Shown piece by piece: positions 1-48,876 of a stretch of DNA of 64,000 nucleotides. Location: the sequence record PV112478.1; one strand, written 5' to 3'. The notes under the pieces were generated by a model. That model made no database searches and was not told the origin of the DNA. It worked only from the letters and a program-made list of their open reading frames with translations. Position numbers and translations under genes: made by a program. Every line of letters starts with the position of its first letter. Position 1 is the stretch's first letter.

Positions 1-836
1 AAATAAGATTGGGTTGGTAACCCGTCGTCAGTGATATTTTCCCACCAAACGTTGGTTGAGAAAATCTGATCAAAAGCGATAGAGAGTTCGCCCAGGCCCT
101 TAGAAAAAATTCCATGGGTCACGAAGAGACTGAGCGATTTCGGGTTTTGGGTATTGAGCTTTTTCGCCAGCTCAGTGAAAGTCCACCCACCATCGCAGAT
201 GTCGTCGACAACCAACAAATTACGACCTTCGATATTGTCATTGTCCAATAACGTAATGTCGAGAATGTTGCCGGTTTTAGTATCGCGCTTTTTGTTTGCG
301 TAAACGATAGGCACCCCGCCGAGTAGTTTTGCCAACTCTTCAGTTTTCTTCGCCGCACCACCGTCAGGGGAGACTAATACGACGTTATTTTCCCGAATCC
401 AATTAGCCAATAAATTGTAGACAATTTTGGACTGTTCCAGGACGACGAGGTTTTTGATCAGTGCCGGAGTAACGTTAGAATGCGGATCGTGTATCAGCAC
501 TCGGTCTGCTTTCAGGCTATTGAACAGTTCAGCAAAAACGCCGAGTGAAAACGATTCGCCTGCATTACAGACACGGTCTTGTCGCGCGTACGGGAAATAA
601 GGCACAATTAAATGGAGTTCTGTTTTCGCAGTGTATTTCCCAATACGACGAATAGCGTCGACCAGTAACAGTAGACGCACTGCCTCGGTGGAAGATTTGA
701 TACTTCCTTCTATTTTAACAACGCCGATATCATGGGGCGGTAGCCCATGACGGTTAATTGTGATATGTTCCTCGCCACCCGGAAAAGTCATATTCTCATA
801 AAGGACCGGTTGGTCATCAAACGTAACTTTAAACAT
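1..836 (-). CDS. prs: Ribose-phosphate pyrophosphokinase family protein (phage Prs / NARP1 Adps-like); 3' end runs off the window
   Basis: Manual translation from ATG at 836 (MFKVTFDD...) is open to the window edge, so it is missing from the ORF track. Motifs FPGGE, PYFPYARQDR, DPHS, SPDGGAAKK, VVDDICDGGGTF, VTHGIFSKG. Confidence 0.92.
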   Translation of the reverse strand, partial: MFKVTFDDQPVLYENMTFPGGEEHITINRHGLPPHDIGVVKIEGSIKSSTEAVRLLLLVDAIRRIGKYTAKTELHLIVPYFPYARQDRVCNAGESFSLGVFAELFNSLKADRVLIHDPHSNVTPALIKNLVVLEQSKIVYNLLANWIRENNVVLVSPDGGAAKKTEELAKLLGGVPIVYANKKRDTKTGNILDITLLDNDNIEGRNLLVVDDICDGGWTFTELAKKLNTQNPKSLSLFVTHGIFSKGLGELSIAFDQIFSTNVWWENITDDGLPTQSY

Positions 837-884
837 TGTAACCCCTTTCAAAGTGTTAAAACTTAATCTTCAAAATAAATATTA

Positions 885-1424
885 TCAGCGTGTTATTGGA
901 TTCTGTATTTTCACGAACGTAGAGAAACGACATCCCTCGTCTTCCCCGAATTCAAGCGACTCAAGGGTCCAACCACGGTGAACTGTAGTATAAGAGAACA
1001 ATTTACTGAGTTCTTGGATAAGATCAATGTCGAGCGGAACATTCCCTTTGGAGCGAATAGGGATTTCCGTCACGTAAAGCTTCTGTACCCGATCTAATAG
1101 TTGTTTGTAGATACTTACCCCTCCGCAGATAACAATCTCGTTGTAGCCTTTTCTAGAGGCGTCTACAGCGATATCTTCAAATGAGCTATACGCGAGGAGT
1201 TCGGGGGTGTTTTCAAACTGACTGAGATCAGAGGTCAAAACGTAATGGGCTCGTCCAGGTAAAGCCCGGCCAATACCTTTAGCCGTGGTCGACCCCATGA
1301 CGATGGCTTTGTTTTTGGTTTTCCTTACAAACCAAGAAAGGTCTTCTTTGGATTTCCAAGCAAGTTTATCATCTTGACCAATAATGAAATCAAGATCGTG
1401 TGCAACGATGAGAGAGAAAATCAT
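885..1424 (-). CDS. folA: Dihydrofolate reductase
   Basis: LIVA..IIG...LAW..KEDLSWF..T..KAIVMG.TT...LPGR..YVLT, ICGGVSIY, LYVTEI. Confidence 0.93.
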   Translation of the reverse strand: MIFSLIVAHDLDFIIGQDDKLAWKSKEDLSWFVRKTKNKAIVMGSTTAKGIGRALPGRAHYVLTSDLSQFENTPELLAYSSFEDIAVDASRKGYNEIVICGGVSIYKQLLDRVQKLYVTEIPIRSKGNVPLDIDLIQELSKLFSYTTVHRGWTLESLEFGEDEGCRFSTFVKIQNPITR

Positions 1425-1570
1425 AATGGGTTACCTGTTAGTGAGTTCAAACTAAAAAGTATATACGTGATAATATACTTCGTTGTTGATATTGTTTTCC
1501 AATTAGCACCACAACAGTGCGTTTCTTGTGACAAGAATCAACCTATTAGCCCGATCGGGCAGGAGATGAA

Positions 1571-3826
1571 ATGAGCACCAATTTTATATCTATGCCAAAT
1601 AGTCAATTCAAACTATCCGATGGAGCGAGGAACGCTAATTTCGGTAAATTGTACGTAGGTAAAGCCAATACCGACCCTACCGTTGCGGCTAATCAAATCC
1701 CGGTAACCGGTGTTGCTACCGACGGTACGAGTACTACGTTAACGCAACCAGTGAATCTGGACAGTCGGGGCTTTCCGGTGGACGCCTCGGGTAAAACCGT
1801 AACACTATCTGTAGACTCTCACTACAGTCTCGCTATATTCGATGCGTACGATAAGTTACAACAATCTGTCAGCGCAGTGGAAACAAAAGAAGTGAGCTCG
1901 TTCGCGGAGCTCAGATCACTCCCTGTACTTCGCGACGGACAGTCAGTAAAAGTTTTAGGTGTCGGCTATGGAGATTTCGTCGGTAAAAAGGGAACAGGCG
2001 TCGATGACGGTTTTACCATTGCTGCCGGGCCTGGTTATTACTGGCAACGCATTGATATTCCTTTTTACAGCGCTAAAAGTGGATCCAGTACGCTGCGGAG
2101 TATTCAAAATAAGCTTCGTGAGATTCCTTCAATATACGATTGGGATAGCGACAGTGCAAATGACGACTCGACGCGTTTTACGAAAGCACTCAATTCTAAC
2201 GCAGATAATATTTTCATTCCAAGTAATACGGAAATAGGGACACTGAAAATTGCGAATATTAACGTTACTCGCAATATTCACTTTTGGGGAACTGCCATTG
2301 CGGGTTACCGTCAAGTTGGCGCATCGCTCGTTATCCTCGACGGTGCCGACTATGGATTTAATTTCAGTGGGTCAGGTAATGGGACCACCGGAAACGGTAG
2401 CCGCTTGATTGGCGGAGGAATGACGGGGATTTCATTACTCGGTCAAACCACGGCGAATAAATCAGACTTTATACGAGTCAGTCATGCTTCCAGTTTAGAG
2501 TTCTCAAACGTATCCCTACGTCAGTCCGCTGGAGCGGGGTTTGTTCTACAGGACTTTATGGAAAGTAGAATTGTTAACTGCTACTTTAACAGTGTCGGCG
2601 GAGAAACTAAAAACGTCATTCATCTTGGCGATTACATGGACAGCGCACCTTGGAACGTTAATAACTTGCACATTGAAGGTTGCACTTTTGGCTCTTGCGG
2701 CGGATACTTAATTTATGCTTCAGAGAACGCCAATGCCGATCTCATTTGGATTAGTAGTAACAAATTCGAATGGGACAGTGATTCGCTTAACCCGAATACG
2801 ACAGATAAGTCAGTTATTTATTTAGGGAAGGTGGAGCGGGTTAATATTGATAATAATGGCTTTGTGTATTATTACCCGGCACACAGTCGTTACACGTCGA
2901 TACTTGAATTGAGCCAGAATGCTAACTACGGGGTACAGTTTAAAGGGAACAGTGCGTGGGGTTGCACGAATGCGAATTACTGGAAGGTTTCTGGCGGCTC
3001 ATTACTGGCTGCGAATAACCGCAGTAACGCCACAATGACAACTGTAGTAACAAGTCCGTATAGCCAAGATATCGAAGCACCTGCTATTCGTACGTCGACA
3101 GGTAATCGACCGACGTCGTACGCAGCAAAACCTTTCTATTCTGATTTTATTCCGGCACATAGACTTACCGGACCTAACGACAGTAACAACTTCGTGACTG
3201 ACCCAGATGCAACGGTTAATGGTACGTGTCAGCAAGCGACCGTAGGGCAGGAAATTCGTCGACTCTTGATCCCAAAAGACATGATGGTTTCCGGTAGGGT
3301 ATTAAAAGTCTCAGCGCGAGTGAAAAGTACGGATACGGTTACCGACGGGAATATTCAAATTGTCCTCGATGGAAATATCATCACTAACAATACCCACTCT
3401 TTAGTGACCAATTCCAATTTTTTAACGGTTCCTGCTAACAGTGGTTGGACTCAGGTAGATTGGTTTATCACGCCGACTTTATTGGGCTCCGGCGCTGGCT
3501 CAATAATATTTAAAAATGTCGGGACGAATACTTTTCTTTTTGACGGGGTTAGTATAAAGTACGCAGATTATTTCGATGTTACTGTACCGTGGACGCCAGG
3601 TACTATTGCGGCAAATACCATGGTTAACACAACGATTACGAGTAGTCGTTTCTCTGCGTTTGTAACCGGTGTCAGTGGCGTTCGGACTGACCAAAGTCTG
3701 GGTGGTGCATTTTCGTCTGCTTATTTTAATGCTGCGAATAATCAGCTAGTTATTCAGCTGCGTACATTTGAAAGTCAGGCTGCGACGTCGGCGACATCCT
3801 TCCGAGTAAGATTATTTTTGAAATAG
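1571..3826 (+). CDS. Tailspike / capsule depolymerase with P22-type head-binding domain and KP32 gp38-like beta-helix
   Basis: N-terminus GKLYVGKANTDPT..NQIPV...QPV.L matches the P22 tailspike head-binding domain. Core (ESRI..NVNNLHIE..DLIWI..NKFE) resembles KP32 gp38. RBS AGGAG upstream, hairpin terminator downstream. Confidence 0.88.
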   Translation: MSTNFISMPNSQFKLSDGARNANFGKLYVGKANTDPTVAANQIPVTGVATDGTSTTLTQPVNLDSRGFPVDASGKTVTLSVDSHYSLAIFDAYDKLQQSVSAVETKEVSSFAELRSLPVLRDGQSVKVLGVGYGDFVGKKGTGVDDGFTIAAGPGYYWQRIDIPFYSAKSGSSTLRSIQNKLREIPSIYDWDSDSANDDSTRFTKALNSNADNIFIPSNTEIGTLKIANINVTRNIHFWGTAIAGYRQVGASLVILDGADYGFNFSGSGNGTTGNGSRLIGGGMTGISLLGQTTANKSDFIRVSHASSLEFSNVSLRQSAGAGFVLQDFMESRIVNCYFNSVGGETKNVIHLGDYMDSAPWNVNNLHIEGCTFGSCGGYLIYASENANADLIWISSNKFEWDSDSLNPNTTDKSVIYLGKVERVNIDNNGFVYYYPAHSRYTSILELSQNANYGVQFKGNSAWGCTNANYWKVSGGSLLAANNRSNATMTTVVTSPYSQDIEAPAIRTSTGNRPTSYAAKPFYSDFIPAHRLTGPNDSNNFVTDPDATVNGTCQQATVGQEIRRLLIPKDMMVSGRVLKVSARVKSTDTVTDGNIQIVLDGNIITNNTHSLVTNSNFLTVPANSGWTQVDWFITPTLLGSGAGSIIFKNVGTNTFLFDGVSIKYADYFDVTVPWTPGTIAANTMVNTTITSSRFSAFVTGVSGVRTDQSLGGAFSSAYFNAANNQLVIQLRTFESQAATSATSFRVRLFLK

Positions 3827-4076: not shown

Positions 4077-4802
4077 TTATTTAAACGCCGGGTGCAGCTT
4101 GATCGTTTTCACTTCGGCGGCCAGCTCTTTATCAGCTTTGGCTTCAGCGAGGTCAACCGCCTGCTGGAGATTAACCCAGAATTCGACGGTGGTTTTGGTA
4201 GCCTTTGCCAGACGGTGCGCGGTGCGGATCGTCAGTTTGGTTTTACCGTTGATCAGGCGAGACAGCGTTGCTGTCGCCAGGCCGATATGCGCAGCGAAAT
4301 CAGTCGGGGAAATTTCTTTCGGTTCCAGGTATTCTTTCAAAAGAATTTCGCCCGGCGTAGAAGGTTTGCGTGCTTTTGCCATTTTCGGTTTTTCCTTTGG
4401 TTTTTCAGGAGGTTGTGTACCATTACTGTTATTGCATAATACTACTTCTTGACGTGAAAGATTACCGAGGAACAGAATCGAGCCAACAGTGAAAATCGAC
4501 TGTTTTACGCCGTCTGGCGTATTACGGAAAAGGGAGACCTGATTTTTATTTTTCTGCAGAAGATCAATGAGCAAATTAACGTGATAATCTGCCGGATTAT
4601 TCAGATCGCGGAAGAGCAGTGCTTCAGCTTCTGTAAAACTGATCTTCTTCTCCTGTACCATCGCCATCTGAAGAGGGAATTTTAACTTATGAACCAAGAT
4701 CCGATACGGTAATGAAACTACCGTTTTCAAATTACCCTCTTTATCGAGAATGAATCGGTTGAGCTCTTCGTCTGTGATGTCATTGTTAACGTAGTGAATC
4801 AT
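4077..4802 (-). CDS. Unknown N-terminal domain fused to HigA/VapI-family HTH antitoxin domain; possible internal start at 4382
   Basis: C-terminal 101 aa TPGEILLKEYLEP..S...FA..IG...TLSRLINGK..LT...A.RLAKA..TT.EFW.NLQ..DL is the HigA signature. AAGGA lies 10 nt before the internal ATG. Confidence 0.85.
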   Translation of the reverse strand: MIHYVNNDITDEELNRFILDKEGNLKTVVSLPYRILVHKLKFPLQMAMVQEKKISFTEAEALLFRDLNNPADYHVNLLIDLLQKNKNQVSLFRNTPDGVKQSIFTVGSILFLGNLSRQEVVLCNNSNGTQPPEKPKEKPKMAKARKPSTPGEILLKEYLEPKEISPTDFAAHIGLATATLSRLINGKTKLTIRTAHRLAKATKTTVEFWVNLQQAVDLAEAKADKELAAEVKTIKLHPAFK

Positions 4803-14147: not shown

Positions 14148-15122
14148 TCAGTCTTCCTTACTGCTCCCGGAAACTACGCTAGTACGAATCCACTTTATTT
14201 TCAGTTGGCGATTAGGGCTATTACGAGCACCGGTCCAATAGCCGTGCCAGTGTGCCCGTCTGATATGCGCTGCTCGCCCGGTCGTCTTCTGTCCTTTCTT
14301 TCGCTTCTCGATTTCTTCGAGGTAATCGACCCCTACCGGAAACTTACGGTGTGCGTTCAGGAACCGTAGGCTATAGTGTTTACCCGACCGTTTCATCTGG
14401 GTAAGTCGAAAGGTATTACGGAAGTCAGCGCGGTCTTGCAACTCGTATTCCTGCGCAACAAACAATGCCACGTTGAGTAACTTAGTGTACGTTTCACGGT
14501 ACCCGTCACGCATTAGAATATCGACAGCTTTAACCGTATCGATATTGTATTCTTTTGCAGCCCGTACAATAGTAGGGTCAGAAGCAATGACCTCCTCTAG
14601 CGTCAAACCTTCATCGAACGGGAAGAATAACGTTTGCGGGAAGCCGTTATCGTTATATGGGTAAACGATCGTCAGTCCCTCTTTCCCGCTCCAGTGTGTA
14701 ACCGTAGAAAGGAAAATCCCTTCGATGATCGGTTCCTCCGGAAGAGGGTGTTTGATAGGACAAGCTGAAAGGTCGACGTACCCTGTCCAATGAGGAATGG
14801 TTTTCAAAACACTGAGCGGCAATTTACCGTTGAATTCAGAGTCCAACACATCAGGTAATAATTCAGCTGGAATCTGATATTCAGGTTTAGTAATTTGCCA
14901 GCAATACGCCATGCTCATATGGCAAAAGATTTCACGATAATACGGGTTAGTGAAATCGATATTATTGTTCCAGCTACGATTCTCTCCCCATATTTCGATA
15001 GGGTAGAAATACGGTGGAATTTCCCCTTTCTTCTCCGTGAGGATCCGATTGAAGAAATCCTTCGCGTCCCATGCCCGTAAACGGGGTAAGAGCATTTTCT
15101 CCATTGTCTCCAGTATTTTCAT
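14148..15122 (-). CDS. AcrVA2/FinQ-family protein
   Basis: 324 aa; C-terminal AHIRRAHWHGYWTG...KIKW versus recalled AcrVA2 PHIRRGHWHGYWQG...RVRW; also W..T...YQ and LP.S.L...P.W..YVD.S. Confidence 0.8.
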   Translation of the reverse strand: MKILETMEKMLLPRLRAWDAKDFFNRILTEKKGEIPPYFYPIEIWGENRSWNNNIDFTNPYYREIFCHMSMAYCWQITKPEYQIPAELLPDVLDSEFNGKLPLSVLKTIPHWTGYVDLSACPIKHPLPEEPIIEGIFLSTVTHWSGKEGLTIVYPYNDNGFPQTLFFPFDEGLTLEEVIASDPTIVRAAKEYNIDTVKAVDILMRDGYRETYTKLLNVALFVAQEYELQDRADFRNTFRLTQMKRSGKHYSLRFLNAHRKFPVGVDYLEEIEKRKKGQKTTGRAAHIRRAHWHGYWTGARNSPNRQLKIKWIRTSVVSGSSKED

Positions 15123-18081: not shown

Positions 18082-19398
18082 TTAGTTCAGAGAACGCCCT
18101 GTTTGAACGACGACTTCGCCTTCTTTCAGGTAGATTTTCTTGCGCGGCTTACGCAGCGCCGTTGCCAGCGGGATATCGCTCTTAGGAACGACATCAAACT
18201 TCGGTAAACCCGCCGCCGCGCGAGCTTCAACGGCCTCCATCGGGGTCAGCATACGGAAGTGTAACGGCTCGCCAAGATAGTGACGGCCATCGCGCATCAG
18301 TGCCGGTTCGATTTTCGATTTGTCGGTCAGGTTAGTCGTGATAATGATTTTACGCGTGGTGGCGCTCCCTACGCCGTCGGTTTCGTTCAGCAGTTCTGAC
18401 ATCATCGTGTTACCGTCAGCACGCGGACGTAAGAGGATATCCCCATCTTCCACAATCACGATTGGGAAGGTAGGATCTTTACGGGTTTTCGCGCCGTGGC
18501 TGTTTGGCAGCGTCAGCATATTACGGGTATTTTCAAAATGCGAACGGTCTTTGAAAAGTTCATAACGCGCATTTTCACCACTGGAGATTTCAACCCTTTC
18601 CATTTTGTCGTCGCTGAACGCGAAGATCTTAGAGATGAATTCTGGGTTTTCGAGGACCTCAGTTTTCTTCGCGTAGATCGCGAAAAGGTTCAGCGCCACG
18701 CAGGTAGCGGAAATGGCGGTCGATTTCCCGGTGCCCGGTTCGCCCATGAGGATCAGAACTGATTCATCAGACTGAATAAAGTCTTCGATGAGCGCTTCCA
18801 CACCACCGTTCAGGAACGGATAGAACTCCTTCTTCGTTTCGCCGCTATGGCGCATAACTCTGGGTTCAAGGTGTGTCATTTCACCCATTGGCGTTTTCCG
18901 AATAACGACTTCAGAATAATAAAATTCCTCTTTCGTTTCGTCAGTACGGTTATCGATTTTGATATTTTCTTGGATCTGAATCAACAGATCGTCGTAGATA
19001 TCTTTCGCCATCATACCTTCGATAGAGAGGTTAGACCTGATGTCGCTTTGAATACGAATGCAGGCGATCGGACGATTGTATTTATCCAGTCCGATGAACT
19101 GGTCATCGTCGTGCTGGAAGAAGCGATGTTTTTCCAGGAACGCAGTTAACCACTGCGTGGATTCGAAGTAGTATTTATTCTGATCGAACATTCGATCGGT
19201 ATCGATGTTGAAGATAGGGAGTCGATTTGCAGTCAGGAAATGACGTACCATTTTATTGACACGAATTTCTTCCTCGTTATTGCCTACGAAACGTGCGTAG
19301 CTCCCGTAAGCTTCGCCGAACGATTCGAAGATATCATTCAGTGATTTAATAGGTGCGTTATCAGAGAGAGATCCAGAGAAAAAAGCGTGCTTGTCCAT
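18082..19398 (-). CDS. AAA+ ATPase with large N-terminal domain
   Basis: Walker A GEPGTGKST, Walker B IVIVEDGD, LLNETDG, sensor-1 ITTN, Arg finger ALMRDGR. Confidence 0.9.
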   Translation of the reverse strand: MDKHAFFSGSLSDNAPIKSLNDIFESFGEAYGSYARFVGNNEEEIRVNKMVRHFLTANRLPIFNIDTDRMFDQNKYYFESTQWLTAFLEKHRFFQHDDDQFIGLDKYNRPIACIRIQSDIRSNLSIEGMMAKDIYDDLLIQIQENIKIDNRTDETKEEFYYSEVVIRKTPMGEMTHLEPRVMRHSGETKKEFYPFLNGGVEALIEDFIQSDESVLILMGEPGTGKSTAISATCVALNLFAIYAKKTEVLENPEFISKIFAFSDDKMERVEISSGENARYELFKDRSHFENTRNMLTLPNSHGAKTRKDPTFPIVIVEDGDILLRPRADGNTMMSELLNETDGVGSATTRKIIITTNLTDKSKIEPALMRDGRHYLGEPLHFRMLTPMEAVEARAAAGLPKFDVVPKSDIPLATALRKPRKKIYLKEGEVVVQTGRSLN

Positions 19399-20327: not shown

Positions 20328-20632
20328 TAAAAGATGAGTCTGATTTCAAAACGCACAGGTATTTTCAAGTGCTTCAATTTTGCTCTTGCTTTTCCTGAAC
20401 AGGCGACTTCAAGCACCAGTTTCTCTGGTAAGTGGTAATCGAACTTGTTCAGATACTCGATACGTTTCTTGATAGACTCGATTGCAGTATTAATCAAGAA
20501 CGGCGCTCCTGTCGATTTCCCGTCTAACGTGAAATAACCTTTAAGCGGGAGAACACCGAACAAGGAATTAATAGAGACTGCCCATTCAGGCAGTCCTTCT
20601 ATCGCGTGATAATACGGAAGTTGTTTCATCAC
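20327..20632 (-). CDS. Hypothetical protein
   Basis: Tiling. Confidence 0.7.
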   Translation of the reverse strand: MMKQLPYYHAIEGLPEWAVSINSLFGVLPLKGYFTLDGKSTGAPFLINTAIESIKKRIEYLNKFDYHLPEKLVLEVACSGKARAKLKHLKIPVRFEIRLIF

Positions 20633-21976: not shown

Positions 21977-22543
21977 TTAAAACCAATCTTCAATAACCCT
22001 TTCCAGGTCGCCTACGCTACTGCTCAACCAGTTCGTTTCATCCGTCCATTCTGTCCAAGGCTGAACCTCGTTTAACAAAGAACAGTCTTTACGCACTTTG
22101 ATAACGGAAAGATCGAGATTAAAAACAATCTCATGTTGAGTCAGTTGCAAATAGAAGATTCCCGTCTGTGATTCTTGGTCCCAGAAAGTCCCGGAACTAG
22201 AGGGATACCGATAAGCGTTTTCGCTGCCCTCAAAATACGCTCCTGTATCCCAGAAAGTCTTCACCCACGGACCAGATTCGTCGTATCCGTTATTCGCCAT
22301 AAACTCGAAGTCTACGAAGGTAAATTGACGTGAGCTAATATATTGACTTACGACTTTCTTGAGCGTTGCAAGTGTCAGCGGCTCTTCGGCAAAGGTTGGG
22401 GAATTGAAAAGTGATTCGTCTTTCCGGTTCATTTGCTCACGAATCTTGCCGGTGAGATCATAACGCTCGGTATGCTCACACAGTTCACTTAGAATCTCAT
22501 CTACTACTTCACGGGTGAGTACAACCACTTTATCGTTAGACAT
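21977..22543 (-). CDS. Hypothetical protein
   Basis: Tiling. Confidence 0.7.
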   Translation of the reverse strand: MSNDKVVVLTREVVDEILSELCEHTERYDLTGKIREQMNRKDESLFNSPTFAEEPLTLATLKKVVSQYISSRQFTFVDFEFMANNGYDESGPWVKTFWDTGAYFEGSENAYRYPSSSGTFWDQESQTGIFYLQLTQHEIVFNLDLSVIKVRKDCSLLNEVQPWTEWTDETNWLSSSVGDLERVIEDWF

Positions 22544-29038: not shown

Positions 29039-29353
29039 TTATTTTTGCCTGATACGGAGTTCGAGTTTAATCGATAAATCGTCACCGCCAGTTTCATCAA
29101 ATGAGAGACTCCGCCAGATTCCTATTTCTCCGCCGTACGCGTAGAAATAAATCTCCCTTTCGAAAATAACGAAGAGCTTCTCGATAATCGCCGTTTCTTC
29201 ATTCGTAAACGCAAAGGACGGAGAAAGCGACTCCGAACGATGTTTAGGTAGCCTCTGTAACAATTCTACGGAATCGTTAAACTCCGTTGAAGTAACACCG
29301 GAGTGACGAGCGTGACCAACCACAAGACACGTTTCTAAAACGCACGTTGTCAT
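29039..29353 (-). CDS. Hypothetical protein
   Basis: 4-nt overlap with thyA stop. Confidence 0.6.
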   Translation of the reverse strand: MTTCVLETCLVVGHARHSGVTSTEFNDSVELLQRLPKHRSESLSPSFAFTNEETAIIEKLFVIFEREIYFYAYGGEIGIWRSLSFDETGGDDLSIKLELRIRQK

Positions 29354-31199: not shown

Positions 31200-31796
31200 T
31201 TATCTGCCTGTACGCGTATTTGCCCAAGAAAACAATCGTTTCAAATTATCTCGATGAGCTAATAAATCACCCCAATCTTTTTCGGGAGAGTTATCACTAG
31301 AAGTAACTCTCTGATAAGCATACATAATTTGCTCGTAAGAAACCTCTACAGGCATTCCGCCTGTCGTTGTGCAGAATAACGGCATAACGACGTTTTTTAT
31401 CGCCAGATTTGGAGATAACTTGTTGAAGCATTTTATCTGACAAAAAGCCGCCAGCGCTGCAAGATATGCGGTGTCTTTACTTTTTAACGGGCCAGGGAAT
31501 CGCATCGTCGGTGCATAACACAATTGAACTGCTTCACTTAGTGAAACTGTGATAGCCTGCCCCACTGGCATTTCTTTACCCCAGAATTGTTTGATGACCG
31601 TTTGGACAGTTTCTTGGGAGCGAGGAAACTTGTCCCTTACTACTTTGTCAAAACCACCGTCCATAATACCAAACGAGTTACCAGGTGTAATAATGCAGTC
31701 GTAATCCTTACCCGGGATCATCGTTCTGAAATCCCGTTTTTCAAAATTTGGCCAGCTATCAAAGCCAGATAAATCAATTATCTTTAGATTAAACAT
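31200..31796 (-). CDS. Macrodomain protein (second family)
   Basis: IITPGNSFGIMDGGFD, PVGQA, YAPTMRFP, MPLFCT.TGG. Confidence 0.85.
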   Translation of the reverse strand: MFNLKIIDLSGFDSWPNFEKRDFRTMIPGKDYDCIITPGNSFGIMDGGFDKVVRDKFPRSQETVQTVIKQFWGKEMPVGQAITVSLSEAVQLCYAPTMRFPGPLKSKDTAYLAALAAFCQIKCFNKLSPNLAIKNVVMPLFCTTTGGMPVEVSYEQIMYAYQRVTSSDNSPEKDWGDLLAHRDNLKRLFSWANTRTGR

Positions 31797-33151: not shown

Positions 33152-33732
33152 TAAACGTCGTAAAATGAAATAGCATGAATTCCCGAGGGGAGATTGTCGA
33201 TCTCTTCGATATCTTTCATATCGAGTAAATTGACAACTAACCCGGTGGATAATAATCGCTTGAGGCTATACGCCACCGCACCAAGCGGAATTTCGAAGGT
33301 AATCGCCTTTTGACATCTGAAATGGCTGACCAGTTTGCGCGGTTTATCCGCTAACCGTTCGAGATAATCTTTATACGTTTCCCCGTCGTGACCACGCAGC
33401 GGCCACTGCCAGATAATTCCGTCTGCGGCTACTATCGCCTCCCCTCGAAAACGATAAGGATTTTGATATTGCTCCCATTTGAGATACCCCGGTTGGTACA
33501 TAGAGCCGTGATCAAGGATCTCCAATTCTTTCCCTGCTATGGCTTCATGAATCATTTCTGCAAGGGCCGGTATGAGAACAGTTTCCCCTGCGGCATTTTT
33601 ACCAAGAGCGACCTTCTCTCCTTCCACTAAACCGTAGACGTCAGCCGCATAAGCGCCACGTTCAAACTTAAATTTCATTCTTTTTTCTCCTCTATTTTGA
33701 AACAACCTACCGGAACATGTTCGACCAGCCAA
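33133..33732 (-). CDS. Hypothetical protein
   Basis: Real start probably MKFKFE (AGGAG RBS, about 33678). Confidence 0.65.
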   Translation of the reverse strand: MAGRTCSGRLFQNRGEKRMKFKFERGAYAADVYGLVEGEKVALGKNAAGETVLIPALAEMIHEAIAGKELEILDHGSMYQPGYLKWEQYQNPYRFRGEAIVAADGIIWQWPLRGHDGETYKDYLERLADKPRKLVSHFRCQKAITFEIPLGAVAYSLKRLLSTGLVVNLLDMKDIEEIDNLPSGIHAISFYDVYWVFTK

Positions 33733-34250
33733 ACCCCGTTCAACGCTTTGTAGAACACGTAGCCGCGTTCCAATAGTTTCTGGGTATCAATACTCAAGAC
33801 TACGAGCGACCCTTTCTTAGCGTACCGTATACCCACTAAACGCGCGGTCTCAATGTGGTCAGTTAAATGAACGAACTGACGCGACCCCGGCGTTAACCCT
33901 TCCTGAAAAATGCTCTCTAAATTCCCCGATGCAGTGCCGTGGTAAAGTACCTCAGGCGGTACCTCTTCATTGAAGGCCATTTCACTTACCGGGAATGAAT
34001 GTCCCTGTACAGCACGGATAGAAGAAAGATCATCGGATAACCCAAATCGTTTCTTATCGTCCGTCTCTACAACGTGCATAATTTCCTGTAACGTAACTGA
34101 CTTATTCTGTTCAGAGAATGCTGCAATCAGGTCGTCGAGTCTGACATAGCCAAGTTCATCAGGCGTTAATTTCAAAGCCTGAGGACGATGACGTAGAATG
34201 AAACACAACGTTTTAGAAAGTTTAATCGGATTATTCACTGACATGAACAC
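33675..34250 (-). CDS. kptA: RNA 2'-phosphotransferase (Tpt1/KptA)
   Basis: LSK.L..ILRH, D.KKRF, IRAVQGHS, LYHGT, RQFVHL, NGVWL. Confidence 0.95.
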   Translation of the reverse strand: MFMSVNNPIKLSKTLCFILRHRPQALKLTPDELGYVRLDDLIAAFSEQNKSVTLQEIMHVVETDDKKRFGLSDDLSSIRAVQGHSFPVSEMAFNEEVPPEVLYHGTASGNLESIFQEGLTPGSRQFVHLTDHIETARLVGIRYAKKGSLVVLSIDTQKLLERGYVFYKALNGVWLVEHVPVGCFKIEEKKE

Positions 34251-34755
34251 TCTTGTTGATGTAAATATTCCATGCAGGGCTCACCCAAACCGGTACTTTA
34301 AAACCGAGATGTTCTTCTTCTCGATAACCCCAGCCCTCTTTCTCGGTAAATGAAAAGAAACGATCCCTGCTCTTTTTTAGGTCGTCGTAGTACCCAAACA
34401 TTCTATGGTCAGTCGCTTCAGCTTTGTATTTCGCATAAAGCATACTACGATAATCGGACTCGAGCTCGTTGTACTCAACCGGCTCATAACCGGTAAGAAT
34501 TGTCACCCCGCCTGTTTCATTTTCGGGATAATATTTCAGCCCTTCCCATACGGCAGGAAGAGGAACGAAGTCCCCCAATTCCCAGATGTCAAACATCGGC
34601 GTCAAGACAGAGCGCGGTTCATCCGGGCAGCAACTGTAGGTCGCGTTTCTCATTGCAGCGTCTTTGTCCGGTGCCATGATTAAAAGAACAGTTGCTTCCT
34701 GAGAATCGGGAACATCGTAAAACTTCTCACTGGCCAGAAACAGTTTCATGTTCAT
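34231..34755 (-). CDS. Hypothetical protein
   Basis: Tiling. Confidence 0.7.
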   Translation of the reverse strand: MNMKLFLASEKFYDVPDSQEATVLLIMAPDKDAAMRNATYSCCPDEPRSVLTPMFDIWELGDFVPLPAVWEGLKYYPENETGGVTILTGYEPVEYNELESDYRSMLYAKYKAEATDHRMFGYYDDLKKSRDRFFSFTEKEGWGYREEEHLGFKVPVWVSPAWNIYINKSVHVSE

Positions 34756-35455
34756 CCCCCTGTTTATTCAAAAGAAATTGTTGGCACTTATTGATAACCG
34801 TCTCTTTATACTTTTCTGCGTGCTCAGCGCCGACTGCCGTATAAAAGTTAAGACCTTTAATGTATCGAACGTTTCGCTCTGTAAACTCTTCTCTGGTCTG
34901 TCCGAAACGAACCCCGATTTCCTGATAGAGTCCATCGAAAATCTCTTCGTCCAAATAGGTCATTGCGTACAGTTGGTCAGCATCACGAATGATGCCAAAC
35001 AAATAGCGCAATACGGACCCGCCAGGGTACTGTGGGAATGGGTCATCGAAGTCGTAATGCGTGAACCCGATCAAAAGCGTGACTAACGTTTTGTCTACTG
35101 TCGGAAATTGACGCCAGAACCCGAGTTGCTCAAGGCGTTGAAACGCGTGTTCAATATTCTTCCAGTCGTTCTTTTCTCCTTGATGACAGAAGTCATGAAG
35201 AAGTCCAGCAATAACAGCTGATTCACGATCCTTCTCAGTGAGCCTATAATAGGTCAAGCTGACATTTGAAAGTAAGTGACTCACCAGTACCCCTACGCCA
35301 ATTAAATGGCGTGTAGAGTGGTACGGACGGCTAATATTCTGCTCCTCTACCCATTGCATGATTTTACCGTACTGGTTAAAGAATTGACGTCCCCAGATCG
35401 GGCTGAAATCCTCTAACGCATACGTGGCCCAGAAGCTTGAAAAGTCAGTGTGCAT
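34727..35455 (-). CDS. HD-domain phosphohydrolase
   Basis: YHSTRH, AGLLHDFCH, IIRDAD. Confidence 0.85.
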   Translation of the reverse strand: MHTDFSSFWATYALEDFSPIWGRQFFNQYGKIMQWVEEQNISRPYHSTRHLIGVGVLVSHLLSNVSLTYYRLTEKDRESAVIAGLLHDFCHQGEKNDWKNIEHAFQRLEQLGFWRQFPTVDKTLVTLLIGFTHYDFDDPFPQYPGGSVLRYLFGIIRDADQLYAMTYLDEEIFDGLYQEIGVRFGQTREEFTERNVRYIKGLNFYTAVGAEHAEKYKETVINKCQQFLLNKQGDEHETVSGQ

Positions 35456-36161
35456 TTTTAACCTCGTTATACGCGTTGTTTACCGCCACCAACGTTTTGC
35501 TTACCGCTTCATTGTCTCGGAGGGTAAGCGGCCAGCTAGGATGCATGTTGATGTAATATTCGTTCTCGCCAGGAGCGAAGTCAATAAAGAATTTATGATC
35601 AACGTTCACTTCCGCAGAAAGCCGATTAATGGCGATATTGTAATGAACCCGACACCATGCTTTCTCCCCAATTGATTTTAGTTTGTCTGGGTTGATTAAT
35701 GGGTTGTTTAAGAAGGACTCAACTGTCCCTTTAAACGGGAGAATATTCATTTCGCCGTTAGAGGAATCCGTCGGTCCGCGATACAGTTTAACAGCATCCT
35801 GACAATACTCTTCTACCCGATCGCAATACGTCGCAATCAACGCTTCAGGTACTGTCGAGAGTTTGTCAGTGAGTTTATCAATCAGTACCGCGGTATCGGC
35901 TTCATCTGACCGGACCATGACCATCGGAAACCATTTATTCAGTAGACAGAAGAAACGGGGGTCTACGCCGTGATTAACGAGGTAAGAAACGAATTCAGTG
36001 GTAGCGATCCCCGCTACCCAGCCGTAGGGCTTAAAGGTACCCGGAGGAGCCCATTCTTCATCAGACCAAAAGTCACGGAGATGAACCTCATCCCTTTTTA
36101 AACGTTGAATAAAGAAAGTGAATTCTGGTTTCTGGTTCAGGAAACGTTCGATGAGTCGCAT
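35445..36161 (-). CDS. Hypothetical protein
   Basis: Tiling. Confidence 0.7.
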   Translation of the reverse strand: MRLIERFLNQKPEFTFFIQRLKRDEVHLRDFWSDEEWAPPGTFKPYGWVAGIATTEFVSYLVNHGVDPRFFCLLNKWFPMVMVRSDEADTAVLIDKLTDKLSTVPEALIATYCDRVEEYCQDAVKLYRGPTDSSNGEMNILPFKGTVESFLNNPLINPDKLKSIGEKAWCRVHYNIAINRLSAEVNVDHKFFIDFAPGENEYYINMHPSWPLTLRDNEAVSKTLVAVNNAYNEVKNAH

Positions 36162-42338: not shown

Positions 42339-43028
42339 TTACTTATTGGTTTTGGTGATATACCACTTCCAAAGGCCGTAGAAAGCATTCATCAAGAATA
42401 CTGCCCACTGTGCCACCTGCGCCCATGAACCCGGTTGATTAAGCGCCGGGATCACCCACAGATAAATCGTGACGCAGTTGATAATGATCCAGAGAATCCA
42501 TTGCTCTGGCTGCTGCTTGATCATCATCCACATGGCGATGAGCGATGCGACTAAGCAGAATGCGTCTAAGGCAGGAAACGGATCCTGCGTCGTTTTAAGG
42601 TATTCGGTCAGGCCATACCAGAAGATAACCCCAACAACCAGATAAGTTATCACGTCACGTAAAGTGATCGTTTTAACCGCTACGTCCGCTTTCGCTGGCG
42701 TTTTACCCAGATCTTTCGTCCAGTAATAGATACCGATGAATTGCATGGGTAAATAAATAGCGTTTAGCGCCGCATTCGCGTAGAGTCCGGTATTGTACGA
42801 AACAATACCGTAGGTAATTACACCAATCGTCCCCCAGTAATAATTAGAGACGCGACCCTTCGCCACCAGAATCACGCAGACAACGTTGGTTAGCGCTGCC
42901 GTGAATTCTAACGGACTGGCTTGCCAGCTCCCCAATCCGACGACGATTAACGCTACGATCAGCCAAAAGTATTCGACTTTCTTCCAGTGCGCAAAGTCAG
43001 TGAAAGTTTTCATTACCAGTGAGTTCAT
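42339..43028 (-). CDS. pnuC: PnuC nicotinamide riboside transporter
   Basis: About 7 TMs; CVILVAKG.VSNY, GLYANA.L, G.YYW, PALDAF, QW.LWI..N. Confidence 0.92.
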   Translation of the reverse strand: MNSLVMKTFTDFAHWKKVEYFWLIVALIVVGLGSWQASPLEFTAALTNVVCVILVAKGRVSNYYWGTIGVITYGIVSYNTGLYANAALNAIYLPMQFIGIYYWTKDLGKTPAKADVAVKTITLRDVITYLVVGVIFWYGLTEYLKTTQDPFPALDAFCLVASLIAMWMMIKQQPEQWILWIIINCVTIYLWVIPALNQPGSWAQVAQWAVFLMNAFYGLWKWYITKTNK

Positions 43029-43031
43029 TTA

Positions 43032-43502
43032 TTATTCCTCAATTTTAATACGGCGAAGGGTATATGCGCCGATGTCAGAATTCAGGGTGCGGAACTTATC
43101 AATGAAGATACTGATTCCGTCTACGTCCTCATAAACGAAAACAGACATATCAGCTTGGCTGTCGATGCGCAGCGATGTATAGTATCTACTGAAATATCCA
43201 TCAACGTCATCAGGGAAACGATTCTTGTTCATCAACTCATGATAAAACATAATGGCCCCGCTATTTCTGGCGATATCTCGAATTTCGCGGAGTGTTTTCA
43301 TCACAGCTTCTTTGTTATCGCAGGTAGGGCTCAGGGTAAAATGAATATCTTCTGGCGCTTCCTCATCTTTACAGAATAGTCCGGCTATCTTTTGTGCAAC
43401 ATTATTTTGGTTAGTTCCATAGATCGTTTTGATGATCACTAACCCACCGCTTTGGAAAAGTCCAGTTTTACGGAAAATAGTGTTTAATTCAGAAATTTTC
43501 AT
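43032..43502 (-). CDS. Hypothetical protein
   Basis: Between nadR and pnuC; GAGG RBS. Confidence 0.7.
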   Translation of the reverse strand: MKISELNTIFRKTGLFQSGGLVIIKTIYGTNQNNVAQKIAGLFCKDEEAPEDIHFTLSPTCDNKEAVMKTLREIRDIARNSGAIMFYHELMNKNRFPDDVDGYFSRYYTSLRIDSQADMSVFVYEDVDGISIFIDKFRTLNSDIGAYTLRRIKIEE

Positions 43503-43523: not shown

Positions 43524-44738
43524 TTACTGATTAGGGATGGAATATTTACCTTCAACACTTTCCACTGCCATCCATGCAGGGTCAGATTCAAAGGACTCAC
43601 CAGCCGGTGCAGGTTGAAGTTTGCCGGGTACACCTTCCCCTAGTGGATCCCATCCTTTAAACCCTTCGTTAAACGCCAACAATTGATCTACAGCTGCTCG
43701 AGCTTGATCTAACCGTCTTTTGTAGGAGTCTCCTGTAATGTAGACTGTACGGTAACGAGGAATTTGGTTTTTAAATTCCCGAAGCATTTGCTGGAAAAGA
43801 CTGTCTGTTTTCTCGCGGTCAGGATTCAACCGCAGACCGTCATCGACCCATGGTACTTCCGGCGAAAGAACCAACACGAGATCGTAATGTTCTTCAGCCG
43901 CGATAGCAGAAACAATAGGGTTAGGTTTACCCTCGTACAGTCGATGGTAATATTCCGTAATGAAGGCGTTCGTATCGATGAAACAGAGTCGATTAGAAGT
44001 ACGTAATGCTTCCTCCTCCAGCTCTTTGTGACGATACGCAATCAACGGGTAGTCAGAACTACGGAGAGTCGCTTCCGAACCCGCTAAGACCGTTTCACAG
44101 TACGTACGACCGTACTCTTCAACCCAGCTGGTATTGTAGAGTTTGGCGAGGTTCTTGACGAGGGAACTTTTCCCGGAACTCTCAACACCTAATACGACCA
44201 CCCGCAAACAATAATCTTTACGGACAATGCTCGGGAGATATTCCCAATGGTCGTAAAGGTTTTCACGGATCATGGTCGCAGAGATGGGAACGCGGGTACG
44301 GTTGCTGTCAACGATAACGTGTTCTACAAAACCGAGGTGCGTTTTGTATTTTTCATCGTAATCCAGCTCGCTACTGAAAATAGCAATGCTCTGCGCCTGA
44401 CTGTGGTTAGCTGCCAGTCTACCCGCCTCGTTGAAAATCTTAGCGCCGAGCAGAGCAGCGTATTCTTTCCAACCGTTAGGGTATTCCGGTACAGAAGCCT
44501 CGTCAATGAAATCGATCGTGACGTGTTCTGTATCCGCGTAAGTTTGTTGCAGCCAGCGCAGACGATTTTTGAAGTTGAGTACCTTTTGGTCTCGTGGCGA
44601 TTGTTTATCCAGCCAACGTTGGTCGTGGGAAAGAATAACGAGGACATGCTTAGACTGCACAGCAGCCTCTGTGATTAAGTTGATGTGCCCCAACGTAAGG
44701 GGCGCGAATTTACCGATTACTACGCCTAAGTCAAACAT
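43524..44738 (-). CDS. nadR: NadR-like bifunctional NMN adenylyltransferase / ribosylnicotinamide kinase, no HTH domain
   Basis: GKFAPLTLGH, ISATMIR, P-loop GVESSGKSSL, EEYGRTY, FIDT, PWVDDGLR. Confidence 0.93.
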   Translation of the reverse strand: MFDLGVVIGKFAPLTLGHINLITEAAVQSKHVLVILSHDQRWLDKQSPRDQKVLNFKNRLRWLQQTYADTEHVTIDFIDEASVPEYPNGWKEYAALLGAKIFNEAGRLAANHSQAQSIAIFSSELDYDEKYKTHLGFVEHVIVDSNRTRVPISATMIRENLYDHWEYLPSIVRKDYCLRVVVLGVESSGKSSLVKNLAKLYNTSWVEEYGRTYCETVLAGSEATLRSSDYPLIAYRHKELEEEALRTSNRLCFIDTNAFITEYYHRLYEGKPNPIVSAIAAEEHYDLVLVLSPEVPWVDDGLRLNPDREKTDSLFQQMLREFKNQIPRYRTVYITGDSYKRRLDQARAAVDQLLAFNEGFKGWDPLGEGVPGKLQPAPAGESFESDPAWMAVESVEGKYSIPNQ

Positions 44739-47010: not shown

Positions 47011-47013
47011 CAG

Positions 47014-47923: not shown

Positions 47924-48351
47924 TATTCCTTCCCTCCGGAGATAACCGAAAATGGATTTGGTTTCTTAGTTTCTTTTGCTGGTTCAGCGGGTTCGTCAGA
48001 ACGCCCGTCAGCAGTGATGAGTTTTTGCGGGAGTTGAATCATCTGTTCCGGGTTATCAGGGTTAAACATCTGAATGACGGACCCCCACGGGAAAGTGTCT
48101 GAGGCGAGTTTACCCCCGAAACGCCCTTCGAAGAACAACCCTTCGTCCAGTGAAGAAAGCTGACAGGAATGCGGAGAAACATTCAGTGTCAATACGTGAT
48201 ATCCCTGCATGTTAGGGACCGGTTTGACATATTGACGAAGAATGGGATTCACGGTGATTTCGGTACCAAAGACCGTGATGTAAATACGGCTGCCATTATC
48301 GATAAGCCAGCTATAACCTGCATCAAACAACGCTTTATTTAAAGAAGACAT
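47923..48351 (-). CDS. sspB: SspB-like ClpXP adaptor
   Basis: YSWLIDN, LTLNVSP, FEGRFGG, FPWGSVIQMF versus E. coli YEWLLDN, IVLNIAP, FNARFGG, VPLAAVLAIY; flexible tail ending FSVISGGKE. Confidence 0.8.
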   Translation of the reverse strand: MSSLNKALFDAGYSWLIDNGSRIYITVFGTEITVNPILRQYVKPVPNMQGYHVLTLNVSPHSCQLSSLDEGLFFEGRFGGKLASDTFPWGSVIQMFNPDNPEQMIQLPQKLITADGRSDEPAEPAKETKKPNPFSVISGGKE

Positions 48352-48380
48352 GTGTTACTCCCGATTGTTATTTAATTACC

Positions 48381-48409
48381 TTCACTCAGGTGATATAGAT
48401 TTTAAAAGC
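48381..48409 (-). promoter_or_regulatory. Putative early promoter, copy 7 (inside the 3' end of the NADAR-like gene)
   Basis: gcttttaaa-ATCTATATCAC-ctgag-TGAA, upstream of sspB. Confidence 0.8.
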
Positions 48410-48876
48410 CGTCGAGTTTCTTCCCAAAACTCCACTAACCATTCTCCGCTTTTAGGCGTAACAACTTTAACGTCGTCTTCCCAGACACGCGCCCCTTTCT
48501 CCATTCGCCAATTACCGAAGACGTAGTAATGGGTAAAAGGTAGGGTTGAATTGACTAACGCTTGGTATTGGTGTTTGTAAGTATTCAGTTTCGCCAGATT
48601 AGCAGCTTTGATAATCGAGAGGAAATCAGGATGATGAACCACTTCCAATTTCTTCCCAAATGCTTTCGCCTCGTTACCGTACAAGCCTCTGAGGTATTGG
48701 TGTTTAAAACCGGTTTTTGCGTAATACCAAAACCCTTCCATACTTTCAAAGTTTCCGTACTCAGGGTGAATGAAAGGTGTCTTTGGAAAGTGAGAGAGAA
48801 AGAACCCGAGACGGTTCTTGGACTTAGAGTAAATGTTGATGTGGTCAATACCGTCATTGTTTGGGTTCAAAGTCAT
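48382..48876 (-). CDS. NADAR-like protein (YbiA / T4 gp30.3 superfamily)
   Basis: FLSHF..PF...F.SMEGFW..K, EAKAFGK, L.NS...H, G.WL.E.W...R.LL. Confidence 0.6.
   Translation of the reverse strand: MTLNPNNDGIDHINIYSKSKNRLGFFLSHFPKTPFIHPEYGNFESMEGFWYYAKTGFKHQYLRGLYGNEAKAFGKKLEVVHHPDFLSIIKAANLAKLNTYKHQYQALVNSTLPFTHYYVFGNWRMEKGARVWEDDVKVVTPKSGEWLVEFWEETRRLLKSISPE

Follow-up and report, generated by a model that had tools for sequence, protein, structure and literature searches.

Several putative NAD+ and ADP-ribose modules, probably independent of one another, in a region of the Klebsiella jumbo phage LPKP23

Introduction

Genes of the NAD–ADP-ribose network are a frequent component of jumbo phage genomes, with a 2022 survey (Iyer, Burroughs, Anantharaman and Aravind; PMC9503650) reporting at least one of them in 85% of jumbo phages and NadV-like genes in 33%, and noting that NadR can co-occur with NadV. 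Here we evaluate such genes in a 64-kb stretch of DNA (hereafter the window, meaning that stretch at its full length) that corresponds at 100% identity to positions 62001–126000 of record PV112478.1, Klebsiella phage LPKP23. A preliminary description of the window, made from its sequence alone, had counted at least seven NAD or ADP-ribose genes in the first 49 kb and had proposed that they form a closed circuit, in which enzymes that erase ADP-ribosylation release ADP-ribose and other enzymes rebuild NAD+ from it.

Several of the systems that these genes resemble have been described biochemically. In NARP1-AP, the macrodomain phosphatase Adpp turns ADP-ribose-1''-phosphate (ADPR-1''-P), the product of aRES, into ADP-ribose; a macro gene was reported in 15% of NARP1 operons, and one aRES was cloned from K. 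pneumoniae (bioRxiv 10.64898/2026.01.28.702374). The published detection rule for NARP1-AP looks for a macrodomain gene (PF01661, PF14519 or PF20016) no more than two genes away from the NARP1 pair. An ADP-ribose-producing enzyme that fuels NARP1 has in fact been demonstrated twice already, with Adpp and with RyDEP, which works with NARP1 as an ADP-ribose-producing partner (bioRxiv 10.64898/2026.05.28.727677). NARP3, published in August 2026, consists of the PnuC protein Bas30_87 and the NadR-like enzyme Bas30_86 (PMC13464706), and AdfN, an orphan phage NADAR, strips ADP-ribose from guanine in DNA and thereby counters DarTG1 (PMC11825919). Beyond phages, the yeast protein YMR087W, the sole studied member of the clade to which one of the macrodomains described below belongs (the Macro2 type), converts ADPR-1''-P to ADP-ribose and is reportedly without activity in removing mono-ADP-ribose from macromolecules (de-MARylation; PMC6397177), while bacterial (Runella) Tpt1 shares a gene cluster with a ligase and an HD-domain end-healing enzyme (PMC6097658).

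Results

Gene content of the region

LPKP23 is a 300.7-kb jumbo myovirus that was sourced from waste water, and it has nine K. pneumoniae sister records at 94–98% identity as well as more divergent relatives, FBKp24 (genus Maaswegvirus) and Centimanus, at approximately 80% identity over the conserved parts. Assessing the first 49 kb of the window, where all annotated genes with the exception of one tailspike gene lie on the minus strand, we found all seven of the NAD or ADP-ribose genes that had been claimed, every one of them on the minus strand: a Prs-like gene (Adps), two macrodomain genes (Macro1 and Macro2), Tpt1, PnuC, a NadR-like gene and a NADAR-fold gene. Their identities had also been called correctly, including the hard NADAR call, for which a fold model matches YbiA/NADAR. 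An eighth gene, Namat, lies just beyond the window start. A Pfam sweep at E ≤ 1 over nearly all of the other ~80 annotated genes in these 49 kb added a sole extra candidate, a weak HD/PDEase-like (phosphodiesterase-like) protein at 34727–35455, and the precomputed Pfam labels from the encoding contigs had missed Macro1, Macro2 and the NADAR-fold protein. Seven to nine NAD or ADP-ribose genes make for a rich set, yet one in character for a 300-kb phage; given the 85% and 33% frequencies of the 2022 survey, this richness is not clearly beyond chance, so that any excess is the less clear part of the observation.

To summarize their biology, we interpret these 49 kb as probably holding several independent modules of known kinds that act on the NAD+ pool or on ADP-ribose derivatives, and that would have accumulated in the accessory region, probably an early one, of a jumbo phage resembling Maaswegvirus. 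These genes have conserved catalytic residues, sit with operon partners and are conserved throughout the clade. Their biochemical activities are predicted from sequence, as is any flow of ADP-ribose from the NADAR or Tpt1/Macro2 modules into NARP1.

Transcription units, relatives and co-occurrence

The strongest terminator-like hairpins in the region (stems of 9–14 bp, all intergenic and on the coding strand) separate the NADAR gene, the run of NadR, an open reading frame (ORF) and PnuC, the run of HD, orphan and Tpt1 genes, and Macro2 from one another, yielding at least four predicted transcription units, with Macro1 and Adps–Namat lying 5 kb and 30 kb beyond the Macro2 unit. A scan for sigma-70 promoters in turn revealed no enrichment (31 found versus 30.4 expected). 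A distant relative, which is a 264-kb metagenomic genome with only 40–60% protein identity to LPKP23, keeps NADAR, Macro1, Macro2, Tpt1 and HD–orphan in synteny and has no NadR/PnuC in the corresponding slot. Because there are at least four predicted units, NARP3 (NadR and PnuC) is missing from this relative, the RNA ligase RtcB is variable within the clade and the nearest outside kin of NadR are found in T5-like phages (see below), the evidence favours separate modules rather than one circuit. FBKp24 retains all nine toolkit genes at 68–96% identity; we considered this retention as a sign of linkage and set it aside, since 71 of 80 neighbouring genes are retained too and the outcome would arise by chance with a probability of ~0.35. 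The toolkit genes are more conserved in FBKp24 than the other genes of the region (Mann–Whitney p = 0.0009), and the same is seen for DHFR, ThyA and an AAA ATPase.

Genome-level base rates came from 50,697 phage records, of which 5.2% carry Macro1, 3.1% Adps, 1.5% NadR, 1.0% the NADAR fold, 0.19% Tpt1 and 0.09% Macro2. Our IMG/VR co-occurrence set comprised 80 NADAR-centred loci that de-replicated to 36 clusters (small, and uncorrected for phylogeny or genome size), and within 10 kb of the NADAR gene these held a Macro1-type gene in 5/36, Namat in 3/36, NadR plus PnuC in 2/36 (one of the two being the query's own clade) and Tpt1 in 1/36, alongside control genes for nucleotide metabolism at similar frequencies (dUTPase 3/36, ThyA 3/36, DHFR 1/36). 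Binomial tests against the base rates gave a p value of 0.04 for Macro1 and of 0.10 for both Namat and NadR. Some of the individual arrangements are adjacent or tight: a Macro1-type gene directly adjoins the NADAR gene in two loci (L041, L096), Namat, macro and NADAR genes are 4–8 kb apart in two others (L043, L057), and the NadR–PnuC pair is 7.5 kb from the NADAR gene in jumbo phages of 354–378 kb. Among Macro2-centred loci other than those of its own clade, the sole toolkit match (L118) was the A2 profile weakly matching the Macro2 ORF itself. These patterns are suggestive of a recurring loose neighbourhood and of no tight system, and the enrichment near NADAR is weak overall, with Macro1 the one family to reach p = 0.04 and control genes similarly frequent.

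These data bear directly on the integrated circuit, which holds that the macrodomains and the NADAR enzyme strip DarT/CmdT-type ADP-ribosylation, that Adps and Namat rebuild NAD+ while NadR and PnuC top it up, and further that the freed ADP-ribose is a quantitatively meaningful feedstock for Adps and Namat. None of the component genes is missing, and all look catalytically competent; the pairing of an ADP-ribose-producing enzyme with NARP1 has its precedents in Adpp and RyDEP, the neighbourhoods just described do include close pairs, and the NCBIfam match of Macro1 to DarG would be compatible with DNA de-ADP-ribosylation. Set against these points, the genes are spread over 49 kb and at least four predicted units, and the modules have been gained and lost independently; the enrichment is weak, and the high conservation of the toolkit is common to ordinary enzymes of the region. 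Macro2-type enzymes reportedly lack de-MARylating activity (PMC6397177), ADP-ribose from modified nucleic acid would by our estimate be stoichiometrically small relative to a depleted NAD+ pool, and nothing bearing on CmdTAC turned up, although no test was aimed at CmdTAC. We consider the integrated circuit unlikely, and the separate predicted units and the missing NARP3 in the syntenic slot of the distant relative count against the closed erase-and-rebuild version of it.

NARP1 pair at the window start

The first of the separate modules begins at the window start, which truncates the gene for Adps (a PRPS-like ADP-ribose pyrophosphokinase; window 1–836, minus strand, with the full 287-amino-acid ORF at record positions 61973–62836), and continues outside the window with the 593-amino-acid Namat immediately downstream (record 60195–61976, minus strand). 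The two ORFs (L002:11973–12836 and L002:10195–11976 in our extracted locus) are on the same strand with a 4-bp overlap, an arrangement that is also found in FBKp24. Homologs of Adps occur in 1578 phage records, the ICP1 and Felixounavirus groups among them, and the sister-phage homolog carries Pfam Pribosyltran, while sister records name the 593-amino-acid Namat nicotinamide phosphoribosyltransferase. LPKP23 Adps shares 38% identity with ICP1 Adps, for which a structure has been solved, whereas the highest-scoring cellular PRPS in the PDB reaches just 77 bits, and it falls below every PRPS equivalog cutoff in NCBIfam. Eight of the nine named ICP1 Adps residues are invariant in a four-sequence alignment (A4; F18, R87, H121, D161, K185, D212, D213, D216), most of the named residues being common to PRPS and hence not discriminating Adps from PRPS (PMC13586617). 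Adps of this clade also has an 11-residue insertion near its C-terminus. For Namat, the match to the SpbetaL1 Namat structures 9W5W/9W5X reaches 401 bits versus ~140 bits to NAMPTs, and alignment to 9W5W reveals that LPKP23 Namat keeps the catalytic His and an R306 equivalent, as well as the two aromatics of the clamp helix (F392 and Y396 in SpbetaL1), the latter two being the selectivity-clamp residues that make Namat specific to ADPR-PP (ADP-ribose pyrophosphate; PMC12774641).

Homology thus identifies the Prs-like gene and its Nampt-like neighbour as a NARP1 pair, in which Adps would add pyrophosphate to ADP-ribose and Namat would join the product with nicotinamide to give NAD+, a rebuilding that in LPKP23 would follow the action of host NADase defences. 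Very improbable, in our assessment, is a purely metabolic role, in which classical synthesis of phosphoribosyl pyrophosphate (PRPP) and nicotinamide mononucleotide (NMN), together with NadR and PnuC, raises NAD+ and nucleotides for a large, fast-replicating genome with no part in defence. Adps does adjoin DHFR, with ThyA and dUTPase in the same region; the Prs-like protein scores above the cutoff of the generic subfamily TIGR01251, as Namat does for a phosphoribosyltransferase (PRTase) equivalog; and Namat retains nicotinamide-PRPP chemistry in vitro (PMC12774641). Countering these, the bit scores and the kept clamp aromatics of Namat place it with the validated Namat rather than with NAMPTs, the Prs-like protein fails all of the PRPS equivalog cutoffs and groups with phage Adps, and both pathways have close homologs with a demonstrated action against Sir2-HerA, DSR and similar defences (10.1101/2024.02.11.579819; PMC13464706).

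Two macrodomains and a putative split NARP1-AP

Macro1 and Macro2 belong to unrelated macro families. Macro1 (26113–26586, minus strand), a macrodomain of the Poa1p/TARG1/DarG clade, scores 20.3 bits against Pfam Macro over the full profile, just under the 22-bit cutoff, and it matches phrog_335 at 1e-42, with homologs that carry PF01661. Full-length alignment with Quinn gp175, a Vibrio phage protein encoded between Adps (gp174) and Namat (gp176) in the arrangement typical of NARP1-AP, gives 35% identity (E = 6e-27). The family profile of Macro1 matches TARG1/OARD1, the DarG macrodomain (5m31) and Poa1p (6lfq) in the PDB, with E-values of 1e-11 to 1e-13 to Poa1p 6lfq and 6lfu, and its only NCBIfam match is the DarG macro region (E = 1e-11).

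Macro2 (31200–31796, minus strand) is of the Macro_2 (PF14519) type and related to YMR087W, scoring 23.1 bits against Macro_2 (cutoff 27) and 16.5 bits against Macro, with homologs that carry PF14519 (closer ones) or PF01661; the best PDB match of its family profile is 1njr, which is yeast YMR087W (E = 3.6e-12). Its homologs occur in 45 phage records, several of them annotated as Appr-1-p processing. In public phage records, Macro2-family genes also widely go under the names 'tail protein', 'tail fiber protein' or 'tail assembly-like protein', labels that look like a propagated mis-annotation of a macrodomain.

Judging from these matches, both macrodomains resemble small-molecule ADPR-1''-P phosphatases, of the Poa1p and YMR087W types respectively. 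The published neighbourhood rule for NARP1-AP does not pick up LPKP23, in which Macro1 is ~25 kb and Macro2 ~30 kb from Adps and no macro gene occurs among the genes directly around Adps–Namat. An unlinked, Adpp-type Macro1 would nonetheless plausibly convert ADPR-1''-P from aRES to ADP-ribose, amounting to a split NARP1-AP, and because the two-gene rule misses LPKP23, the 15% macro share of NARP1 operons is probably a lower bound for NARP1 phages that carry such a gene. The phosphatase resemblance, together with the reported lack of de-MARylation in the YMR087W type, speaks against the macrodomains as erasers in a circuit. Of the idea that released ADP-ribose feeds Adps and Namat, the part that stands has the published precedents of Adpp and RyDEP and the homology of Macro1 behind it; its extension to erasers of macromolecular modification is something that we infer.

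A putative NARP3

The gene for a PnuC-type nicotinamide riboside transporter (42339–43028, minus strand; PF04973, E = 3e-43) scores 121.9 bits against TIGR01528 (cutoff 42.45) and has an ortholog in FBKp24 with 96% identity. The NadR-like NMN adenylyltransferase/ribosylnicotinamide kinase (43524–44738, minus strand) lacks an N-terminal helix-turn-helix (HTH), as does its match Bas30_86 (9X6F/9X6H; E = 8.8e-144, residues 2–357 aligned over 8–353), and it keeps both the GH motif of the nucleotidyltransferase and the P-loop of the kinase, with a C-terminal tail of ~47 amino acids past the end of Bas30_86. Both genes share a strand and a predicted unit, and between them lies a 156-amino-acid ORF (43032–43502, minus strand) that belongs to no Pfam, PHROG or NCBIfam family.

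Taken by homology, the NadR-like and PnuC genes of LPKP23 are NARP3, in which PnuC would import nicotinamide riboside and the HTH-less NadR-like enzyme would convert it to NMN and then to NAD+. Both genes had been called correctly in the preliminary description, which did not recognise that they jointly correspond to this named pathway (PMC13464706). Since the nearest relatives of NadR outside the clade are in T5-like Salmonella phages (62% identity), their sequences suggest that the gene was acquired separately. The 156-amino-acid ORF is missing from FBKp24, where a 50-amino-acid ORF takes its place, yet the distant relative, itself without NadR and PnuC, encodes a homolog at 32% identity, which suggests that it is a resident gene outside NARP3 and that the NARP3 genes were inserted around it.

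A NADAR-fold protein of the phrog_652 family

The last of the seven genes (48382–48876, minus strand) encodes a 164-amino-acid protein of the phrog_652 family that has no match in Pfam (including its NADAR model), in NCBIfam or to a named PHROG. Because these family searches gave nothing, its NADAR identity rests on a PDB profile search and on structure prediction. The profile of its 29-homolog family has as its best PDB match the NADAR 8bau, which is weak (E = 0.09), and its AlphaFold model, with a predicted local distance difference test (pLDDT) of 96.3, has as its top PDB match E. coli YbiA (2b3w; template modelling (TM) score 0.63), followed by 8bau and 8bat (the Phytophthora NADAR with ADP-ribose and the Geobacter NADAR) and by nothing else credible. 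The viral structure library BFVD returned dozens of matches named NADAR. At the residue level, E47, which no fewer than 90% of the 29 family sequences share, aligns with E43 of PnNADAR (PMC11543638), and K54 aligns with PnNADAR K50, the 7-residue spacing of E47 and K54 being that of E36 and K43 in T4 AdfN (PMC11825919); family members commonly have a His at position 116, and the second acidic-or-His position of PnNADAR is E125. The family is present in 513 phage records, all 'hypothetical' among the records listed.

Seeing this modelled fold and these residues, we propose the protein as a candidate AdfN-like ADP-ribosylglycohydrolase, its most likely activity being the removal of ADP-ribose from DNA guanine, by which AdfN counters DarTG1. 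In some family members other domains are fused on: a metagenomic one (P0007) has an N-terminal DUF4326 fusion (PF14216, E = 1e-18), and one in Erwinia phage RAY (BFVD A0A173GE06) is 293 amino acids long and annotated 'DprA-like'.

Tpt1 and its RNA-repair context

Tpt1/KptA, an NAD+-dependent RNA 2'-phosphotransferase (33675–34244, minus strand; PF01885, E = 2e-43; 7kw8, E = 1.4e-40), has an intact catalytic tetrad of R18, H19, R66 and R122, which are R16, H17, R64 and R119 in RslTpt1 (PMC6097658), and the family occurs in just 98 phage records, mainly of jumbo phages. Tpt1 is part of a run of overlapping ORFs that comprises an ORF at 35445–36161, an HD/class-I PDEase-like phosphohydrolase (34727–35455, minus strand; a weak assignment), an orphan 172-amino-acid protein (34231–34749, minus strand, its ORF overlapping that of HD upstream and Tpt1 downstream), Tpt1 itself and two small ORFs, with strong hairpins flanking the run on both sides and Macro2 ending the next unit downstream. 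The HD protein matches phrog_16069 'phosphohydrolase' (E = 3e-25) and has a 71%-identical ortholog in FBKp24, so that within the Tpt1 unit it may act as a phosphodiesterase or a phosphatase. The orphan has no Pfam or PHROG family and no P-loop/Walker A motif, and it is represented by 5 clusters among 1.84 billion proteins; orphan and HD domain form one 398-amino-acid ORF in the distant relative (L016:4685–5881). An identity of the HD and 172-amino-acid ORFs as an HD-Pnk end-healing enzyme was considered and rejected, the partner having neither a P-loop nor a known fold, and the fused 398-amino-acid protein giving only weak PDEase matches, in its HD half, when compared with PDB sequences.

The Tpt1–Macro2 distance is 0.8–1.9 kb in this lineage and ~0.8 kb in the distant relative, where an RNA ligase (PF09414) and an RlaP nucleotidyltransferase (PF10127) lie beside the two genes. 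The RNA ligase RtcB is present in FBKp24 and KpSz_1 (L008:18502–19746; L012:28956–30200) and absent from LPKP23, a presence/absence polymorphism within the clade whose position corresponds to the gap between window 20629–21957 and 21977–22543. No 2H cyclic phosphodiesterase was found in the window. Because of the ligase and RlaP neighbours in the relative and of RtcB in FBKp24 and KpSz_1, the gene context points to a Tpt1 unit that serves RNA repair rather than erasure of ADP-ribosylation; the HD–orphan–Tpt1 unit most likely carries out NAD+-dependent removal of an RNA 2'-phosphate, and Macro2, ending the following unit, would clear the ADPR-1''-P by-product of Tpt1. Tpt1 is a consumer of NAD+ and no eraser of ADP-ribosylation, and its links in this lineage are to RNA-repair genes.

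A broader version of this idea extends RNA repair to most of the set, such that Tpt1, HD, the orphan, both macrodomains and perhaps NADAR serve tRNA or mRNA cut by host anticodon nucleases, the 2'-phosphate being removed and the ADPR 1''-2''-cyclic phosphate and ADPR-1''-P then being processed with no toxin countered, and the NARP modules being unrelated neighbours or merely replacing the NAD+ spent by Tpt1. Consistent with this, the two macro families correspond to the pair of yeast enzymes by which the by-product of Tpt1 is cleared (PMC6397177), Tpt1 and Macro2 are close together with the RNA ligase and RlaP flanking them in the distant relative, sister phages have RtcB, and bacterial Tpt1 is clustered with an HD end-healing enzyme and a ligase (PMC6097658). 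Harder to reconcile with it are the position of Macro1, which is far from Tpt1 and has homologs inside NARP1 operons elsewhere, the tested phage NADARs, which act on ADP-ribosylated DNA (PMC11825919), and the HD partner, which has no P-loop and so is no polynucleotide kinase. Moreover, in the unrelated phages Ea35-70 and phiCD211, the 5 kb to either side of Tpt1 hold neither a macro nor an HD nor a NADAR gene. We regard RNA repair across the whole set as a possible, though doubtful, explanation.

Other genes of the region

A 324-amino-acid protein (14148–15122, minus strand) has the PF26125 (AcrVA2-like) label, matches phrog_6160 and is 84.5% identical in FBKp24, making it a possible anti-CRISPR-type gene in the accessory region. 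The tailspike gene at 1571–3826, the only plus-strand gene of the region, has a sister counterpart with Head_binding and Beta_helix domains and no counterpart in FBKp24 at ≥60% coverage; because it is not conserved there, it is probably a variable receptor-binding protein. A 241-amino-acid HTH_3 protein (4077–4802, minus strand), labelled HigA-like or 'plasmid antitoxin', is 81% identical in FBKp24. The thymidylate synthase (29350–30729, minus strand) is unusually long at 459 amino acids, and its homolog in the 264-kb relative (L015:4106–6122) is interrupted once by a NUMOD3/I-TevI-type homing-endonuclease ORF. Two AAA-family ATPases are also present, one at 23659–25038 (minus strand; BCS1_N and AAA domains, 55% identical in the distant relative) and the other at 18082–19398 (minus strand).

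Discussion

Several observations weigh against our interpretation of the region as a set of independent modules with these particular identities. The terminator scan that delimits the predicted units is a match to a consensus only, with 28 hairpins found versus 18.9 expected. In the putative NARP1 pair, a Cys replaces the adenine-stacking F92 of ICP1 Adps in both LPKP23 and FBKp24, and two large insertions set LPKP23 Namat apart from its SpbetaL1 counterpart (593 versus ~490 amino acids). Macro1 is about equally close to the DarG/TARG1 macrodomains and to Poa1p, and because of this near-equal closeness its sequence could alternatively be that of a DNA or protein de-ADP-ribosylase. K54 is not conserved across the NADAR-fold family. 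As for the Tpt1 unit, the matches of the HD protein to PDEase_I (E = 2e-4) and HD (E = 5e-3) are under the Pfam cutoffs, the model of the orphan protein (pLDDT 86.7) has no fold match in the PDB, and no RNA ligase gene was found in the LPKP23 window, which weakens the RNA-repair reading for LPKP23 itself.

The circuit concept is a reasonable extension of known biology and introduces no new principle. The novelty is in the details, namely a putative split NARP1-AP invisible to the published neighbourhood rule, the presence of NARP3 along with NARP1 in one genome (the original NARP study having come across no phage that combined NARP1 with NARP2), a NADAR-fold family without annotation and the HD–orphan–Tpt1 unit. 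A joint claim can be built from these parts, namely a self-contained NAD+ economy in which Tpt1-spent NAD+ is recovered, NARP1 is resistant to aRES and phrog_652 is a fourth AdfN type. Under this claim, HD and the orphan may be a new cyclic phosphodiesterase that replaces the 2H enzyme, Macro2 and Macro1 may remove the 1''-phosphate for Adps and Namat to rebuild NAD+ and may also make NARP1 resistant to aRES, and the phrog_652 family may be a widespread one. Taken as a whole, we consider this combination quite improbable.

The independent modules that we favour make existing annotations more informative, as the present labels 'prs', 'hypothetical', 'tail protein' and 'phosphatase' become readable as NARP1, an Adpp-type macrodomain, NARP3 and an AdfN-like NADAR, and they do so in a clade that infects K. 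pneumoniae, a species with reported aRES and Sir2-HerA defences. Two leads follow: a NADAR-fold family in 513 phage records that is recognised by no curated model, and a protein of orphan fold that is linked with Tpt1 and an HD phosphohydrolase.

Comparing the region with known systems, the virus-wide survey (PMC9503650) described the same jumbo-phage repertoire (NadV-like, NadR, Macro, NADAR, KptA) along with its co-occurrence, and it is older than the biochemical reassignment of Prs/NadV to Adps/Namat and older than Adpp, AdfN and NARP3. The yeast tRNA-splicing pathway (Tpt1, Poa1p, YMR087W; PMC6397177) finds its likeness in an intact Tpt1 tetrad and a macrodomain of each phosphatase clade, and the Runella Tpt1/HD-Pnk/ligase cluster (PMC6097658) in an HD-domain protein gene upstream of Tpt1 within the same overlapping run, with RNA ligases nearby in relatives; unlike either pathway, the LPKP23 window has neither a 2H enzyme nor a ligase, and its HD partner has an orphan fold rather than being a P-loop kinase. 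With AdfN (T4 gp30.3, AdfN-Bas32 and AdfN-Bas60), the LPKP23 protein shares a single-domain NADAR/YbiA fold, an orphan gene in a large virulent phage, and the ADP-ribose-contacting Glu and Lys at the same spacing, but it belongs to a separate family (phrog_652) that is unseen by Pfam NADAR and within which the Lys varies.

Compared with NARP1 (Osterman et al., 10.1101/2024.02.11.579819), LPKP23 has the same overlapping Adps–Namat pair and keeps the clamp and catalytic residues of Namat and the acceptor-site residues and K185 of Adps, whereas the two Namat insertions and the Cys at the F92 position set it apart. The likeness to NARP1-AP is a full-length homolog, in the LPKP23 genome, of an operon-embedded macro gene; the difference is that this gene is ~25 kb off, in another predicted unit, and missed by the published rule. 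Finally, the NARP3 of T5-like phages is matched by a close HTH-less homolog of Bas30_86 (E = 9e-144) with both catalytic motifs and by a PnuC-family gene nearby on the same strand, whereas in LPKP23 an unrelated ORF lies between the two genes, the enzyme has its ~47-amino-acid tail, and both genes sit in a 300-kb jumbo myovirus whose genome also carries NARP1.

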